A DNA stretch of 64,000 nt from Utricularia gibba (GCA_002189035.1 NEEC01000004.1:4836001-4900000); one strand, 5' to 3'; positions 8,674 through 21,970 are shown, counted from the first letter of the stretch. Made by a program: numbers and translations. The notes: generated by a model not told the origin, from the sequence alone.

Positions 8674-10289
8674 CGCCCACAACGCTTTTCTTCTGCTCCT
8701 GCGCTCAAGATCAAAAGCGACCAGAAGCTTGGCACCCAAGCATACAGGGACCTATACACACAGTAGGTTGGGACTCTGTGATTCCATGTACTTGGACCAA
8801 AATCTGATACGTTAAAGAGCAGAATCTGAACCTTCTTTTCTGAGGGGATTTTGGATGCTATAAATAATTTTGAACGGACACCGAGACCGAACTCTAACGG
8901 TTCGGATGCGCTGTTCTCATTGGACGCGTCCTTTAGTTAAATTTGGGTGTTTATAATTTAAATATCTGTGTTATTAAAAAATTTATTTAATAAACTTATT
9001 TGCTAGCATATATGGATGTATTTGATATAATGCTGTAATAATATTGTATTTAAATAAATACATATCATATAATGAAGGATTTGATCTAAATAAGAGTGTA
9101 AAGAATTTAGGTAAATACTACATGATGGGAGTAAAATACAGTTTATCTAATTTTATGTGAATCTTTCTTTTTAGAAAATGAGAATGTAATATTGTAGTTA
9201 GGTATCCAAAATAAATAATATCATATAAAAAAGATATGGATTGTTATATTTTTAAATATTAATTTTTAATATATATATATATATATATTTATTTAAAATA
9301 AATATAATTTTTCTTTATTTTATAATAATAATTGATTTGACGTTATTTAGTTTGACTTTAACATATAATAACTTGATGCATTTTATTTTGAAGTTTTTAT
9401 TAATATTTATAAAATAATTTAAATATAAATTAAATATTAAAAATGGAGACTATCAGATACACGCATAATTTTCATTTTAGGAATTGATGTACTCAAACCG
9501 GTGAACTCATAAATCAATAAATGCAAGCATCCGCACTCGTATATTCTAGTTTTGAAACTTCATTAATTTTATTTATACTTTAAAAATTATAACTATATAA
9601 ATATATTTTCAGTAAACATTTCTTATTTTATTTATAATTTATCAATCAAACATTCATCAAATTCATATATCCCTATTCCGTCAATATTTTTAATAAATTT
9701 TAATAATTTCTTTCTTGAAATAATTATTACAAGGATTTTTCCTTATTGTAATAAACACGAAAAAATTGGTATATTCTTGCAATTTATAATATTTTTATAA
9801 TATATCTTTATTAATAATATGAAAATTAATATAATATTAATAAAATTATGTCGAGTTCTCTGTGAATTCCCAATCCCAAGAGCCCCCAAATGAATAAACC
9901 TTCAACGATATCTCATCCTATTCTATTCGCCGTCAGTCGCCGATTCCGGTGAGATTGTGTCCGCCGCCGTCGCGTCTATGTTCCCCAGTTCGAGTTCATC
10001 TGGAGTGGGTATATTCCAATTATCTCAGCGACTCAGGATTCGAAGATCTGTCGAGACATCCACCCTCGGCCTCCAACTGAACCCTGTGTTGAGCTGGAAG
10101 CTACTTCACTTCACGTATGAACTGAGAGAAAGACGGCTTTTGTCATCTCCCGGCGTACAGCTGAAGAAGAAAAATGGCTTCCAGGTCATGCTTGGGTTCA
10201 GATGGAGTGTAGGGGTGGATGTTTGTAGGGATCTTTGAACCAGCGGCGTGGTACTTGGAATTTCCCTGCTCAACTTGGGGAACATAGAA

Positions 10290-12364: not shown

Positions 12365-12674
12365 TGTTAGAGCCTTGGATTGAAACGGGTGACAGGACCC
12401 AGTTTGCACAGAAGAAGAAGAAGAAGGTTGCGAAGGAAGCGAGATTCAACACAAGTTGTCTAACAAAGAGAAAAAAACAGAAAAGTAGTCCATCAAAGAG
12501 AGCAGAAAACAAGTAACAAGGGAGAGTTCAGCCTCCAGGAAAAACACTCCGTCACACTCCGGCAGCCTCAAAGCTCGAGTCTACGTTCAGCTCTAACCTT
12601 CGATTGGCGGCAGGGAACGCACTCTTAAGCTCCAATAGACGATGGGCTCGATCCAGGGATAGAGGTCTGCATCA
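12365..12674. mobile_element. Solo LTR (310 bp) with 5-bp target-site duplication AAGTG
   Basis: Ends TGTTAGAGCC...GCATCA (TG...CA); AAGTG at 12360-12364 and 12675-12679; the paralogous site at ~16184-16198 is empty (gtag-AAGTG-tcgg). Confidence 0.88.
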
Positions 12675-13128
12675 AAGTGTCGGAACTTTGGATTTGCTCC
12701 GTTGATGAATCAGGATCATGATTCAAGCTCATTTGCGCTGAACTGGCCTTGGGTAGCATAAGAGTGACGACAGTGGGTATACATCCAAGAGAATCGATGA
12801 CTGACATGGTGTAGAATACGATCAGGCATGGTTTTAGATTCCTTGATTTGTAAACTATTGAGACTTCACGGGTGATCATCCAAGCGGAGAAGCAGAAATG
12901 AATCAGATCATATATTATTTTGACGACTGTGTTTGAAATACACACTTCAGCTATCTTCCAGGTGGAAATGAACTCAACCCCGAACAAGAAGAGGATAACA
13001 TAGGGTGCAACCCTAATTGCAATATACCAGAAGGCTGCCGGCTGCAGTTCATTACTGAAACCTCCGAGGGCAACATTTCCCAAGAAAACGATCAAGGCTT
13101 GTAGTAGCCTTCTCCAACTCATCTTCAT
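12625..13128 (-). CDS. Island family copy B: single-exon multi-TM protein, 167 aa, native C-terminus replaced by solo-LTR sequence
   Basis: Open ORF MKMSWRRLLQALIVFLGNVALGGFSNELQPAAFWYIAIRVAPY...KIIYDLIHFCFSAWMITREVS...SRNLKPCLIVFYTMSVIDSLG. The displaced native tail (SKILRSEIRFLPANEPSDELGAVVTQV*) lies beyond the LTR at ~12272-12360. Confidence 0.6.
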   Translation of the reverse strand: MKMSWRRLLQALIVFLGNVALGGFSNELQPAAFWYIAIRVAPYVILFLFGVEFISTWKIAEVCISNTVVKIIYDLIHFCFSAWMITREVSIVYKSRNLKPCLIVFYTMSVIDSLGCIPTVVTLMLPKASSAQMSLNHDPDSSTEQIQSSDTLMQTSIPGSSPSSIGA

Positions 13129-16092: not shown

Positions 16093-16686
16093 TTATACTT
16101 GAGTAACAACAACAGCTTCTAGCTCATCAGTTGGTTCATTTGCAGGCTGAGACTGGATTCCTGAACGGAGGATCTTCGAAGTAGAAGTGTCGGAACTTGG
16201 GATTTGCCCCGTTGATGAATCAGGATCATGATTCAAGATCCTTTGCGCTGAACTGGCCTTGGGGAGCATAGAAGTGGCTATACATCCAAGAGAATCGATG
16301 ACTGACAATGAATAAAATACGATCAGGCATGGTTTTAGATTCCTTGATTCGTAAACACTTGAGACTTCACCGTTGATCATCCAAACGGAAAAGCACAAAT
16401 GAATGGATTCATATATTATTTTGACAACTGCGTTTGGAACCCACACTTCAGCTCTCTTCCAGGTAGAAGCGTACCGCGATTTCTTGCATCGGAAACGCCG
16501 ATTATGACGGCGAGTGAGAAACCCAAACCGGAACGAGAAGGGCGTAAGCGTGCACGCATAGGGTGCAACCCTAAGTGCAATATACCAGAAGCCTGCCGGA
16601 TGCAGTTCATTAGAGAAACCTCCGAGGGGAACAGTTCCCCAGAAAACGATTAAGGCTTGTAGTAGCCTTCTCCAGCTCATCTTCAT
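16093..16686 (-). CDS. Island family copy C: intact single-exon multi-TM protein, 197 aa from MKMSW
   Basis: Uninterrupted ORF, start inferred by homology to copy B. Hydrophobic segments (LLQALIVFWGTVPLGG, FWYIALRVAPYAC, IHLCFSVWMI, CLIVFYSLSVIDSLGCIA) and an Arg-rich loop. Confidence 0.65.
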   Translation of the reverse strand: MKMSWRRLLQALIVFWGTVPLGGFSNELHPAGFWYIALRVAPYACTLTPFSFRFGFLTRRHNRRFRCKKSRYASTWKRAEVWVPNAVVKIIYESIHLCFSVWMINGEVSSVYESRNLKPCLIVFYSLSVIDSLGCIATSMLPKASSAQRILNHDPDSSTGQIPSSDTSTSKILRSGIQSQPANEPTDELEAVVVTQV

Positions 16687-18559
16687 CTTATTGGTTGATG
16701 ATGAGTCAATTAAGGAGAATTTCATCAGAGCCCGCACGGAGAGGAGAGTTGCAGTAGGTGGAAGTGTAAAACAGGAAAGAGGAAGCTGAGCGTGGGATGC
16801 GGGATGAAATGAGAGTTGCAGAAGTGGAAGTGTAATTAAGAAGAGGGAAGAAGTAGGAAGTGGGGTGGGGCAATCCTTTTCTAGTTCATTTGCATTTACC
16901 GCATCCACCCCATCCCACCGTTTAATTGTCCACGTGGACTGCTGCTAATTTGCTCACAATCGGGAGGGGCGGGTACAGATGCGTCATTGAATACATCATG
17001 TAGAAAATTATTTTCTAATGTAGAAAATATGTAAAAATATAATGATAACTCTAATTTTGTTAATTTGTCCTCACTTAGGATACAAGAATATCATATTATA
17101 AAAACTGCAAACCTTATGTTCGATACACATGCCTTTTAACCTCCCATCGTTTTATGTCTTCATAATATACCCCAATGTAAATGTGTATTATATATATAAT
17201 ATGTGCATCTGTGTTAACCATGTTATTTGATGGGGACTAATTATGTATATGACACGTGGAGATGAAATCCTCTAGAAAATGGTCTTAAGACATGAATTAC
17301 ACGAGCATCAAAACAGTCGATTGTTATTGTCAGCAACACCATACATATGAACACAAAACATAGAAAACAACTAACATTTTCAGTATTCCGTTGAGTCAAC
17401 CTCCCTTATAAATATAATAATACTTGAAGGAAAAGGTATTAGATTCTCGACACACTATTTGTAATCAACTTTTCTCCTTTGTTAGTGAAACTGATTTCTT
17501 CGATAAACTTTCCCAATTCTGTGACTTTTTCCGTTTATCGATAGTTTTCATGTAAAAATCCCTATATACATGCAATTCTTTTGTCCCCACTAATGCAGGA
17601 GAAAGGCTGATTGATCGAAGAGAAGATTTATTTTACACAGGTCCTTTTACTTACAGTATTTAGCCCAATAAATGGGGCACGAATTAATTGATGTATATAA
17701 ACACTGAAGACTAGTTTGAATAGAGAGAGAGGAAAATTGGGTTCACAGAAACCCGCAAAACCCTTCGCGTTCTTGGCATCTCTTTCTTCGAAGAACACAA
17801 TCTCTCCTGGGGAAGTCACAATACCCACATCAGCACAAATACCCGTAAAACCTTATATCGGATACGGTAAAACCGGCTTGACAACCCCAAAATCGGCCAT
17901 CATCAATAAAGCCGATTTTTTACCACAATACTATTATTTTACACAATATATACTATAATAATTTGCATCACATGAATGTGAATATCAGGTATTATATTTC
18001 ATAGTAAGGTTAATGCAACACAAGTTTCAATTATCTATGAATCATATTCTGTGTGGGATGTGGAAAAAGCTTGCTGAGAGATGCTTCATTTGGCATGGAT
18101 CATCGTGCATTAGGAGCTTGATAATAACACCTTGATCCGGCTTCTTGTGAATTACACCTGTGAGAGACTTCAGCTGGTTCACTCAGTCCTTCGCCCTCCT
18201 CAGCTAACACTGCAAATTACATGGGCCAGTTGGGAACTCTCCAGGGCATCATTCGCCAACTGCGGCGACTGGGTGCGGCGGCAAAAGATGAGTATTTATA
18301 TTGAGAATTTATTTTGCTAAAAACCAAAATATAAAGATATTTGAAGTATTGAAATAATAAGATTAATTGTATGTAAATTTTAAATAGTAAAAACTAATGG
18401 TGCTGATTATTCAAACATTGGGAATCAAATATGATAAGAGGGTGTTTGATAATATATTATAAAAGATTTATATTCAAGTTTAAATATAAATCGTTGTTTG
18501 ATTAATTAGTATATGATGAATCATGATTTCAGATTTGTTGTGTGGGAGGCTTTGTAGAG

Positions 18560-19025
18560 ACTTCAATGTTAAAAAAATTCCTTCTTGTAATTTATCATAA
18601 TTATTAAAAATTTGTTGTAACATGATCTCGTGTCATTGAAAAAAAAATCATATTACAATTCTTATTACAAGAATATCATTTCAAGAATTGTTATTTTTAA
18701 TAAATAATATTATTAAATGTTAATAATTTCCTTTTTGAAATATTATTACAGGAATGTTATTATGATAATAACAATGTCTCATATTACAATTTTTCATTAT
18801 TATAAGAATTTCCTTCTTCTAATAAAATAAAAATTATGAGAGTTGGTATTCTTCTTGTAATTTATCATGTTGAAAAACAAATTCTCATAATATCATCATA
18901 TTGCAAAGAATATCATTTCAGGAATCATCATTTTGTATAAATATTCCTTCTAGAAATATTCTCATAAGAATTTCCTTCTTGTAATTTATCATAATTTTGT
19001 AATAAATACTTAGTAATAATATTAT
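18560..19025. repeat. AT-rich array of degenerate short repeats immediately left of the hairpin cluster
   Basis: CTTCTTGTAATTTATCAT recurs at ~18581, ~18850 and ~18975; AAGAATATCATTTCA at ~18669 and ~18906; AAGAATTTCCTTCTT twice. Confidence 0.7.
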
Positions 19026-19129
19026 ATTGTGTTCTCAATATTTATATACGAGTTGTGTTCGTCCATTTGAACAATCACCCGTGATATTACAATACCCTTC
19101 CGAATCAAGAAACTACAAGTACTGCCTCA

Positions 19130-20670
19130 TGATGTTCTATTTGCTCTCAACAGCAAATTCTGTATGGTTTCTCGTCCACACTATACTGATATGGAGGGCA
19201 CAAAATGGGGATACCCAGGATCCAAGATCATCAGCTGGGCGTGTTCCAACCATCTCAGTCGCTGATGATGCTGCAAGTTCGATGATTCGTCCAGACATCC
19301 ACCTTTGGTAAACAACAACAGCTGTTAGCTCATCATTTGGTTCATTTGCAGGCTGAGACTTGATTCCTGGGATTTGCCCCATTGATGAATCAGGATCATG
19401 ATTCAAGCTCATTTTGCGGAACAAAAGAGTGATGGCAGTGCCAAGAGAATCGATGACTGAGATTGAATAAAATACTATGAGGCATGGTTTTAGATTCCTT
19501 GATTTGGTAACCCTTGAGACTTCATCGTTAATCATCCAAACCGATGAGCAGAAATGAATCAAGTCATATATTATTTTGAGAAGTGTGGTTGAAATCCGCA
19601 TTTCAGAAATGAGCAGAAATGACTTGCCCCGTTCTGACGGCGATTCCGACGGCGATGAACGGCGATTCCGACGGCGAGACTGGATTCATGGGATTTGCCC
19701 CGTTGATGAATCAGAATTCCTGGGAAACCCAAATAGGAACGAGAGCGCAACCATACAAGAATATGGCGCAACTCTAAGTGCAATATACCATAAGGCTGTC
19801 GGATGGAGTTCAGTGCAGAAACCGCCGAGGACAAGAGTCCCCCAGAAGACGGTTAAGGCTTGTATCATCATCTTCTGTATGGTTCCTCATGGACACTATA
19901 CTGATATTTTATTTGCTCTCAGAAGATGATGATACAAGCCTTAACCGTCTTCTGGGGGACTCTTGTCCTCGGCGGTTTCTGCACTGAACTCCATCCGACA
20001 GCCTTATGGTATACTGCACTTAGAGTTGCGCCATATTCTTGTATGGTTGCGCTCTCGTTCCTGTTTGAGTTTCCCAGGAATCCTGATTCATCAACGGGGC
20101 AAATCCCATGAATCCAGTCTCGTCGTCGGAATCGCCGTTCATCGCCGTCGGAATCGCCGTCGGAACGGGGCAAGTCATTTCTGCTCATTTCTGACATGCG
20201 GATTTCAATCACAGTTCTCAAAAGAATATATGACTTGATTCATTTCTGGTCATCGGTTTGGATGATTAACGATGAAGTCTCAAGGGTTACCAAATCAAGG
20301 AATCTAAAACCATGCCTCATCGTATTTTATTCAATCTCAGTCATCGATTCTCTTGGCACTGCCATCACTCTTTTGTTCCGCAAAATGAGCTTGAATCATG
20401 ATCCTGATTCATCAATGGGGCAAATCCCAGGAATCCAGTCTCAGCCTGCAAAAATGAACCAAATGATGAGCTAACAGCTGTTGTTGTTTACCAAAGGTGG
20501 ATGTCTGGACGAATCATCGAACTTGCAACATCATCAGCGACTGAGATGGTTGGAACACGCCCAGCTGATGATCTTGGATCCTAGGTATCCCCATTTTGTG
20601 CCCTCCATATCAGTATAGTGTCCATGAGGAACCATACAGAATTTGCTGCTGAGAGCAAATAAAATATCAT
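19130..20670. repeat. Hairpin H2: long near-perfect inverted repeat, arms ~19178-19877 and ~19920-20621, 42-nt loop, with more diverged outer extensions
   Basis: The ORF track gives near-identical translations on opposite strands (19571-19834- vs 19963-20238+; 19686-19871- vs 19926-20111+; 19137-19601- vs 20196-20474+). About a dozen substitutions plus one 2-bp indel counted by eye. Confidence 0.97.
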
Positions 20671-20762
20671 AAGGGAGTTGCGTTGATTTTCTGACTCCGA
20701 AGGTGCTAGGAGTTCACGGCTGATCATCCAGAAGGAGAAAGAAGCACAAATGGATCCCACAA

Positions 20763-21194
20763 GCTTCTGCAAGCCTTGCTCGTATTCTGGGGCAATGTTG
20801 CCCTGGTGGGGTTCAGCAGTCAAATGGATCCCCCAAGCTTCTGGTACGTCGCGGTGAACCTGGCACCGTATGAGTGGATGAACCCCAATATTCTCCAACG
20901 ACAATCAAGGTTTGCGTTACGCAGGTGCCGCCGCCAAAACTGCCGTCGTTTCCGACTGCCGGACTTCACGGGTGATCATCCAAAGGGAGAAACACAAATG
21001 GGGGACATACCTCACTGCCCATCCCTTTGATGATATCCTCCCATTGGAATTGAAGCCCCGCAGTCGGAAACACCGGCGGTTTTGACGGCGGCGCCTGCGG
21101 AACCCAAACCTTGATTTTTGATGGGGAATATTTGGGTTCATCCACTCCTACGGTGCCAGGCTCACCGCAGAATACGAGCAAGGCTTGCAGCAGC
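20763..21194. repeat. Hairpin H3: imperfect inverted repeat of family 5' halves, core arms 20851-20968 / 21051-21168, plus a 26-bp outer stem
   Basis: gcggtgaacctggcaccgtatgagtggatgaaccccaatattc pairs with gaatatttgggttcatccactcctacggtgccaggctcaccgc; outer gcttctgcaagccttgctcgtattctg pairs with cagaatacgagcaaggcttgcagcagc. Confidence 0.88.
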
Positions 21195-21291: not shown

Positions 21292-21970
21292 GACGGCGTT
21301 TCCGATTGTACGGTTTCAAGTCCAACCGGAGAATATCTGACGGATGGAAAGTTCTCAATATATAATAAATGAGATCATCCATTTGTGCTTCTTCATTTGG
21401 ATTATCTCCCACGAAATTTCAAGACCTTCGGAATCAAGGAATCAAAAAACTTGTCTCGTTATATTTTATTCACTGATAGCCGCAGATTCTGTATGGGCCG
21501 TCGTCGCTTCTATCTTCCATAACACCAATTCATGGAGAGTGCAAAACCGATGATCTCAGTTCATCAAGTGAGCAGATTCCAACCATCTTCGTCACTGATG
21601 ATGCTTCAAGTTTGATGATCCGTCCAAATATCCCTAAAAATATGAATATCTGGGCGGATCACCGAACTTGCAGCTTCATCAGTGACTAAGATGCTTGGAA
21701 TCTGCCCAGATGATGAACTTGGATCAGGGTTAACTCCATTTTGTGCTCTGCGTGAATTGATGCTGTGGAGTATAGAGTGGACGAAGGGCCATAGAGAATT
21801 TGCTGCTGCAATATTTTTGGTTTTTTTGATTCGGAAGGTCTTGGAACTTCGCGGGTGATCATTCAACGGGAGAAACACAAATGGATGATCTCATATATTA
21901 TATGAAGAAGTTTCCATCCCTTAGATATCTTCCGATTGGAATTAAAACCGCCCGATCGGAAAATGCCGTC
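21292..21970. repeat. Hairpin H4: imperfect inverted repeat, ~330-340 bp arms (~75-80% identical), ~12-nt loop at ~21633-21644
   Basis: aatgagatcatccatttgtgcttctt pairs with gagaaacacaaatggatgatctcata; gatccgtccaaatatc pairs with gaatatctgggcggatc; outer gacggcgtttccgat pairs with atcggaaaatgccgtc. Confidence 0.9.

Follow-up and report, generated by a model that had tools for sequence, protein, structure and literature searches.

The 42-nt loop of a long, near-perfect inverted repeat in the genome of Utricularia gibba, here called H2, was found to consist of templated filler DNA, which is the new result of this analysis. H2 is located between 19 and 21 kb of the window, a 64,000-nucleotide stretch of DNA (GCA_002189035.1, NEEC01000004.1:4836001-4900000). 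Judged from the alignments, one of the two arms was probably re-synthesized off its inverted partner, either in break repair or in replication template switching. With moderate confidence, H2 is regarded as a genuine endogenous inverted repeat built from a dead composite unit of a local ORF family, formed in one synthesis event and likely without a selected function.

Geometry and arm identity of H2

The gapped local alignment of the left arm (19178-19877) with the right arm (19920-20621) resulted in an identity of 97.9%, with a loop of 42 nt between the arms. This alignment merges two repeat pairs that the repeat search had listed separately, namely an inner pair of 533 nt (19345-19877 / 19920-20452; 98% identity, 42 nt apart) and an outer pair of 252 nt (19096-19347 / 20452-20703; 91% identity). 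The arms differ by 15 substitutions (9 transitions and 6 transversions) and one 2-bp indel, which was determined to be a run of three T in the left arm (19345-19347) and of five T in the right arm (20450-20454). In the initial annotation, arms of about 700 bp with about 98% identity and a 42-nt loop had been described, together with about a dozen substitutions and one 2-bp indel. This description was borne out by the alignment, in which two of the sample differences given there could be located at positions 19715 and 19783, and H2 is confirmed as a real feature of the sequence.

The differences are spread along the arms, with a cluster of five in 19548-19602, which could be an unconverted patch. 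No difference was found in the last 94 bp beside the loop; at a divergence of 2.1% about two would be expected there, so that this gap is not significant.

A weaker homology outside the arms had also been noted earlier, and the alignment indeed runs on to 19074 on the left and 20724 on the right. The identity is about 84% in 19128-19177 and lower farther out, and for the whole outer stretch it was 70% between the left and the right side (82 of 117 aligned columns). The boundary of the 98% tract is sharp: four mismatches within 8 nt (19170-19177) are followed by none over the next 38 nt. Those parts of the outer-type sequence that lie inside the tract are 98.4% identical (124/126), compared to 70-84% beyond the boundary.

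Composition of the arms and the local ORF family

The gene content of the window is that of a plant and includes genes for PPR, LRR receptor kinase, DOF, AP2 and aspartyl protease proteins. The region of approximately 10-22 kb forms an island in which one ORF family is repeated; its copies P12 and P16 lie on the minus strand (Table 1). Family copies recur every 3.2-3.5 kb (at 12772, 16273 and 19428), and the parent-type copy in the left arm of H2 sits in the register of this tandem array.

A tree of the homologous pieces separated two subfamilies with 98-100% support. The parent type comprises P10, P12, P16 and the inner parts of both H2 arms, and the outer type comprises the outer parts of both H2 arms and both arms of the fold-back H4. 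Each H2 arm is thus a composite of an outer-type fragment lying tail-to-tail with a parent-type copy, the joins being at 19303/19304 and 20495/20496. A tail-to-tail pair of family fragments in each arm had already been read from the sequence, and it was recovered by tblastn with hits on the plus strand at 19102-19302, the minus strand at 19874-19305, the plus strand at 19917-20453 and the minus strand at 20754-20497. The orientation map continues with a plus-strand hit at 20758-20871 and onward, the array being alternately inverted.

Table 1. Features of H2 and the nearest uninterrupted copies of the ORF family (positions in the window).
Feature	Position	Strand	Remarks
Left outer fragment, outer-type	19035..19177	+	approximately aa 165-210 of the family ORF; tblastn, blastn; outside the homogenized tract
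Left arm, outer-type part within the 98% tract	19178..19303	+	124/126 identical to 20496-20621
Left arm, parent-type pseudogene	19304..19877	-	aa 78-270 of the 16-kb copy; tblastn 19874-19305
Loop, templated filler pieces A and B	19878..19919	+	exact reverse-complement matches
Right arm, parent-type pseudogene	19920..20495	+	tblastn 19917-20453; TGA at codon 62 and frameshift
Right arm, outer-type part within the 98% tract	20496..20621	-	alignment with the left arm
Right outer fragment	20622..20754	-	tblastn; together with 20607-20621 holds both filler templates
P16, nearest uninterrupted family copy	16093..16908	-	271-aa ORF; possible trans target
P12, second uninterrupted family copy	12625..13128	-	167-aa ORF

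The parent-type sequence of the left arm (19311-19864) is collinear with 16105-16661 in P16 at 72-80% nucleotide identity, and the outer-type part of the same arm is collinear with 21546-21633 in H4. Outside the tract, the left outer fragment was found to be 70% identical to its right-hand partner and 67-70% identical to the H4 arms.

According to the translations, an in-frame TGA at codon 62 is common to both arms. Both also contain an ectopic 42-nt copy of a C-terminal motif (19676-19717 / 20080-20121) and a 12-nt tandem repeat in four units (19632-19677 / 20120-20165), and neither of these is present in P16 or P12. Since the arms share the stop codon, the ectopic motif and the tandem repeat, the unit was dead before it was homogenized. 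The frameshift of the right arm results from the 2-bp indel at 20450-20454. The ectopic sequence is a direct copy of the motif DPDSSxGQIP, located 321 bp from the normal one, and may have entered this composite unit by an earlier templated insertion.

Between the arms, nine nonsynonymous and four synonymous changes were counted. For P16 compared to P12, a dN/dS of 0.92 was determined. The ORF family evolves neutrally and shows no sign of constraint at the protein level; this value is based on two copies and is compatible with a function of family members elsewhere in the genome. The "gene family" of P12 and P16 may thus be one that encodes no functional protein.

Database searches gave no relative of the family. 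No domain was found by Pfam in five family or arm ORFs, and a word-index search of 5.8 billion proteins with P16 returned no homologue. An exhaustive search against 1.8 billion representatives yielded only two bacterial Thr/Ser-rich repeat proteins, which were rejected as homologues because the matches are compositional (low-complexity) noise. In the ESM Atlas there was no match above 0.9 and no convincing neighbour; a weak lead at rank 24 (score 0.82) is SIS3_N, the N-terminal membrane region of a RING E3 protein. Among the JGI metagenome contigs, the family profile gave 203 pattern matches, of which none was confirmed. Look-ups of exact products found no record for the PPR gene, a 154-aa arm ORF or a 116-aa ORF that crosses the loop. 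For the whole window no family exceeded the Rfam gathering thresholds, so that no known MIRNA or other RNA is present.

The loop as templated filler

The loop and the nucleotides directly bordering it are made of two pieces copied from the right-hand edge of H2. Piece A (19873-19907) is the exact reverse complement of 20607-20641 (35/35; blastn-short E-value 1.8e-12), and piece B (19902-19922) is that of 20649-20669 (21/21; E-value 2.6e-5). The templates are located about 700 bp away, which places the source within 1 kb. Microhomology was found at each of the three template switches, with overlaps of TTCTG (5 nt) between the end of the left arm and piece A, TGATAT (6 nt) between pieces A and B, and CAG (3 nt) between piece B and the start of the right arm. 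At all sites where the left and right outer sequences differ (7/7), the filler shows the right-outer state.

Compared with the loop, the order of A and B is reversed on the template, which excludes a simple deletion as the source of the loop. As templated filler, the loop marks a discrete synthesis event. When other sites were checked for filler, the spacers of the fold-backs H1 and H3, the H4 centre and two further junctions (near 19303 and near 20756) proved to be plain family sequence, and the filler signature is therefore specific to the H2 loop. A scan of the JGI metagenomes for the junction between A and B gave no match.

So-called filler DNA is a known feature of repair junctions in plants. 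Three consecutive switches at 3-6 nt of microhomology, together with an exact filler of nearby origin, are a recognized footprint of polymerase-theta-type end joining or of MMBIR/FoSTeS template switching, and by analogy the H2 loop would be the product of one of these pathways. Templated inverted insertions at breaks are among the subjects of PMC11724301, and a link between templated insertions and MMBIR is drawn in PMC8421209. Templated insertions at repair junctions also appear in PMC7165422, there in a context of polymerase theta and MMBIR/FoSTeS. The H2 filler resembles such junctions in being an exact copy from a source less than 1 kb away, in the consecutive switches at 3-6 nt of microhomology and in its inverted orientation relative to the template. 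It differs in that it seals an inverted tract of 700 bp which was templated by homology, and not a simple break.

Origin and age of the homogenized tract

At 19177/19178, the identity steps down within a single uninterrupted fragment of the outer type, which is collinear across the step with its partner and with the H4 arms. The register is kept and no indel was found at the step. A de novo inverted duplication would not stop in register at this position; thus the recent event used inverted homology that already existed. This homology is old and of family level, since the identity is 70% between the two outer sides and 66-70% between either of them and the H4 arms. In the tree, the two outer sides are weak sisters (support 82/83). 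In the initial annotation, a recent event, either an inverted duplication or a conversion between the arms, had been proposed to overlie an older palindrome. The recent event is supported by the identity step and the filler; the older palindrome applies only loosely, given that its sides are no closer to each other than to the arms of H4.

In the proposed course of events, the DNA would first break, or a fork would stall, between two old fragments that are homologous and inverted relative to each other. A free 3′ end would then pair in the short identical patch 19178-19215 / 20584-20621, and approximately 700 nt of the partner arm would be copied in inverted orientation. Two extra short switches onto the right outer edge would close the join and leave the 42-nt loop. 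The left arm may have been copied from the right one, with the filler made in trans, or the right arm from the left one, with the filler arising by snap-back on its own strand; both versions fit equally well. Afterwards, both arms would have mutated independently.

The arm differences were polarized against P16, P12 and H4. The right arm was found to be derived at seven sites and the left arm at three to four. Derived states in both arms indicate two real copies and not an error-laden copy of one. Substitution rates commonly used for plants range between 7e-9 and 1.3e-8 per site per year. Very roughly, the event would be 0.8-1.5 My old, based on the divergence of 2.1% and on the assumption of no later conversion.

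Alternative origins

An assembly artefact, in which the left inner arm and the loop, or the adjacency of the arms, were made by the assembler, is considered very unlikely. Contigs of four runs (X1, X2, X5 and X11) were compared with the window, and none of them covers 19641-20007 including the loop, so that for the centre of H2 the assembly is the only source. In addition, the X1 and X2 contigs on the inner part are all of the right-arm haplotype. Such holes are, however, expected, because the depth is only about 3-4x and contigs merge palindromic k-mers. The left and right flanks of H2 differ and each of them is unique sequence, which argues against a fold-back chimeric read, and each is tied to its own arm by contigs with arm-specific variants. 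One X1 contig (17714-19347) joins the left flank to the left arm with no mismatch and carries the left-specific states at 19216 and 19271, and an X2 contig (20008-20904) joins the right arm to the right flank, also with no mismatch. A second X1 contig (20138-20435) matches the right arm without mismatch. Contigs of X5, which is from another study, show left-type states at 19573-19635 and the left-type state of the indel. Moreover, at the seven sites with a derived state in the right arm the left arm has kept the ancestral one, which would be impossible for a spurious copy, and a filler bounded by microhomologies is a biological signature. Two doubts had been raised at the outset, namely that H2 could be a single copy in a fold-back chimera or that the arms might differ by sequencing-type indels only. 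The former is contradicted by the unique flanks and the arm-specific short-read contigs on both sides, and the latter by the 15 substitutions and the derived states in both arms.

The short centre between long terminal inverted repeats would also fit a fold-back transposon or a MITE-like insertion, and pieces of the arms occur at a depth of 50-137 in X5, which points to related sequence in multiple copies somewhere. These X5 pieces are short, 95-99% identical and derived from the interior of the arms, not from the termini. No direct repeat of at least 8 bp could be identified between 18990-19185 and 20615-20810, and thus at any plausible end. The fold-back transposon was rejected because of this lack of a target-site duplication; the arms are also collinear with the local tandem family and lie in its array register, and their ends fade into family homology without a sharp stop. 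A transposon origin is therefore hardly credible. Continuing gene conversion between the arms, with no founding event and an incidental loop, was judged rather unlikely. Arm-to-arm gene conversion is known from the ampliconic palindromes of sex chromosomes, and H2 resembles these in having arms far more alike than the flanking inverted homology and in the sharp edge of the tract. The identity step with its kept register looks like the boundary of a conversion tract, and the 94 bp without differences beside the loop point in the same direction, although their length is within expectation at this divergence. However, H2 is far smaller than an ampliconic palindrome, and a divergence of 2.1% that extends along the entire tract, both arms having derived states, does not fit frequent conversion and suggests one past event. 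The boundary is abrupt, and a filler with three microhomology junctions requires template-switching synthesis. The sharp boundary, the spread of the differences and the filler taken together favour one event over continuing conversion, while several conversion events could have had the same result and are not strictly separable from a single one on the basis of the sequences.

Hairpin formation and silencing potential

The RNA of 19400-20397 (998 nt) was predicted to fold with -927 kcal/mol, compared to -283 ± 9 kcal/mol for shuffled sequences (z = -73). For the longer RNA of 19074-20724 (1,651 nt), -1475 kcal/mol and 771 pairs between the arms were calculated. The longest perfect duplex runs were 114, 112 and 93 bp. 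According to these models, a read-through transcript, if there is any, would necessarily form a duplex of about 745 bp. Among the 21-mers of the left arm (n = 728), 21 match P16 perfectly and 147 with up to two mismatches; for P12, the corresponding numbers are 20 and 105. Targeting of P16 and P12 in trans is therefore possible on sequence grounds.

The two gene copies in H2 point outward, their ATG codons being only 54 bp apart, which leaves no promoter inside, so that any transcription must come from outside. As a candidate promoter, a TATA-like run near 19040 was rejected because it aligns with KIIYD-type codons of the family in H4a and H4b. In one RNA run (X11), no contig was found on the arms or on other family copies, a result that cannot show absence, since it is based on contigs. 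The observed/expected ratio of CpG was 0.78-0.82 in the arms, no different from the mean of the window (0.82); there is thus no footprint of long-term targeted methylation, and the ratio is uninformative in this respect.

Inverted repeats that silence genes naturally are known from PAI1-PAI4, soybean CHS and rice LGC1. The class of endoIR-siRNAs has been defined with examples such as IR71 and IR2039 in Arabidopsis and Mu killer in maize (PMC10827316). H2 has in common with these plant loci that a long and nearly perfect inverted repeat lies within one molecule around a short loop, and if transcribed it would provide a substrate for DCL2/3/4 that is independent of RDR. Like most endoIRs, it is young and lineage-specific. 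In contrast to them, the source of its arms is an ORF family that is orphan and apparently neutral, not a transposon or a known gene, and H2 is known from its DNA structure, which has no promoter inside. The idea that MIRNA genes originate when a target gene is duplicated in inverted orientation goes back to Allen et al. (2004), as cited in PMC10827316. With such loci and with the silencing inverted repeats, H2 has in common that members of a neighbouring gene-like family are copied in inverted orientation in its arms (72-80% nucleotide identity), which include perfect 21-mers. However, the founder of H2 was already interrupted by a stop codon, the family is unconstrained, and arms of 700 bp that are 98% alike are far from the short, imperfect hairpin of a miRNA-like precursor. 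Of the properties expected for a proto-MIRNA, homology of the arms to a founder was present, and a constrained, functional founder was not.

A working endoIR or hairpin-RNA locus of proto-MIRNA-like character, with Pol II read-through, dicing by DCL2/3/4 and silencing of the family in trans, would account for the near-perfect duplex with its long perfect runs and for the 21-mers shared with P16 and P12, and it would belong to a recognized class including IR71 and Mu killer (PMC10827316). Several family-derived fold-backs lying side by side in the island are also consistent with it. This function is nevertheless regarded as unlikely. The ATG codons facing outward and the lack of an internal promoter are against it, as are, within the limits of one run, the RNA contigs, the neutral and orphan nature of the target family and the CpG ratio of the arms. 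Moreover, the arms of the fold-backs H3 and H4 have decayed to 77-86% identity, as expected without selection for pairing. Most likely, H2 serves no selected function and arose incidentally as inversions and duplications recurred in a neutral, lineage-specific island. With read-through it would act as a source of endoIR-siRNAs able to hit P16 and P12, and it may incidentally yield siRNAs.

Wider meaning and neighbouring sequences

H2 is an ordinary endogenous inverted repeat from gene-like sequence, the origin of which is unusually legible, and otherwise looks like a probably functionless product of local rearrangement. Plant siRNA and MIRNA genes are believed to be built from long endogenous inverted repeats, and the DNA event that creates them can rarely be read. 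The H2 junction is a clean natural example of repair synthesis building a structure competent for RNAi, and it gives a dated start for asking how fast such loci gain or lose small-RNA output.

A more far-reaching interpretation, which we regard as highly doubtful, is that the region of 10-22 kb is a self-renewing "palindrome nursery" in which siRNAs from a regenerated hairpin police a young, multi-locus orphan family. Inverted fragments would provoke breaks, repair would use the inverted partner as its template, and templated filler would close the joins; H2 would be the current near-perfect hairpin, and H1, H3 and H4 its decayed predecessors. If true, this would be a plant counterpart of the arms race between hairpin RNAs and target genes in Drosophila.

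Further observations concern the surroundings of H2. The fold-back H4 (21551-21726) has only 4 nt between its inner arms, which are 83% complementary. In the alignment, the outer-type fragment of each H2 arm ends exactly at the point that corresponds to the H4 centre, position 19300 aligning with 21633. Each half of H2 therefore resembles a tail-to-tail palindrome of the H4 type that has come to have one parent-type arm. The AT-rich left flank of H2 (18703-19022) is 79-83% identical to 9683-9820, which lies left of H1 (approximately 10.1-10.7 kb), and flank and fold-back may have been duplicated as a block.

A segment of about 230 bp (17591-17824) has a depth of 36-66 in X5 and is the only part of 16-22 kb found in the RNA contigs of X11. 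These contigs carry unrelated sequence on both sides and about ten differences; the segment probably represents part of an expressed multi-copy element or of a gene from elsewhere. At 16705-16837, just upstream of the core of the P16 ORF, an X5 contig has 19 other letters in place of 131 bp, which is a structural variant or a paralogue in another genotype.
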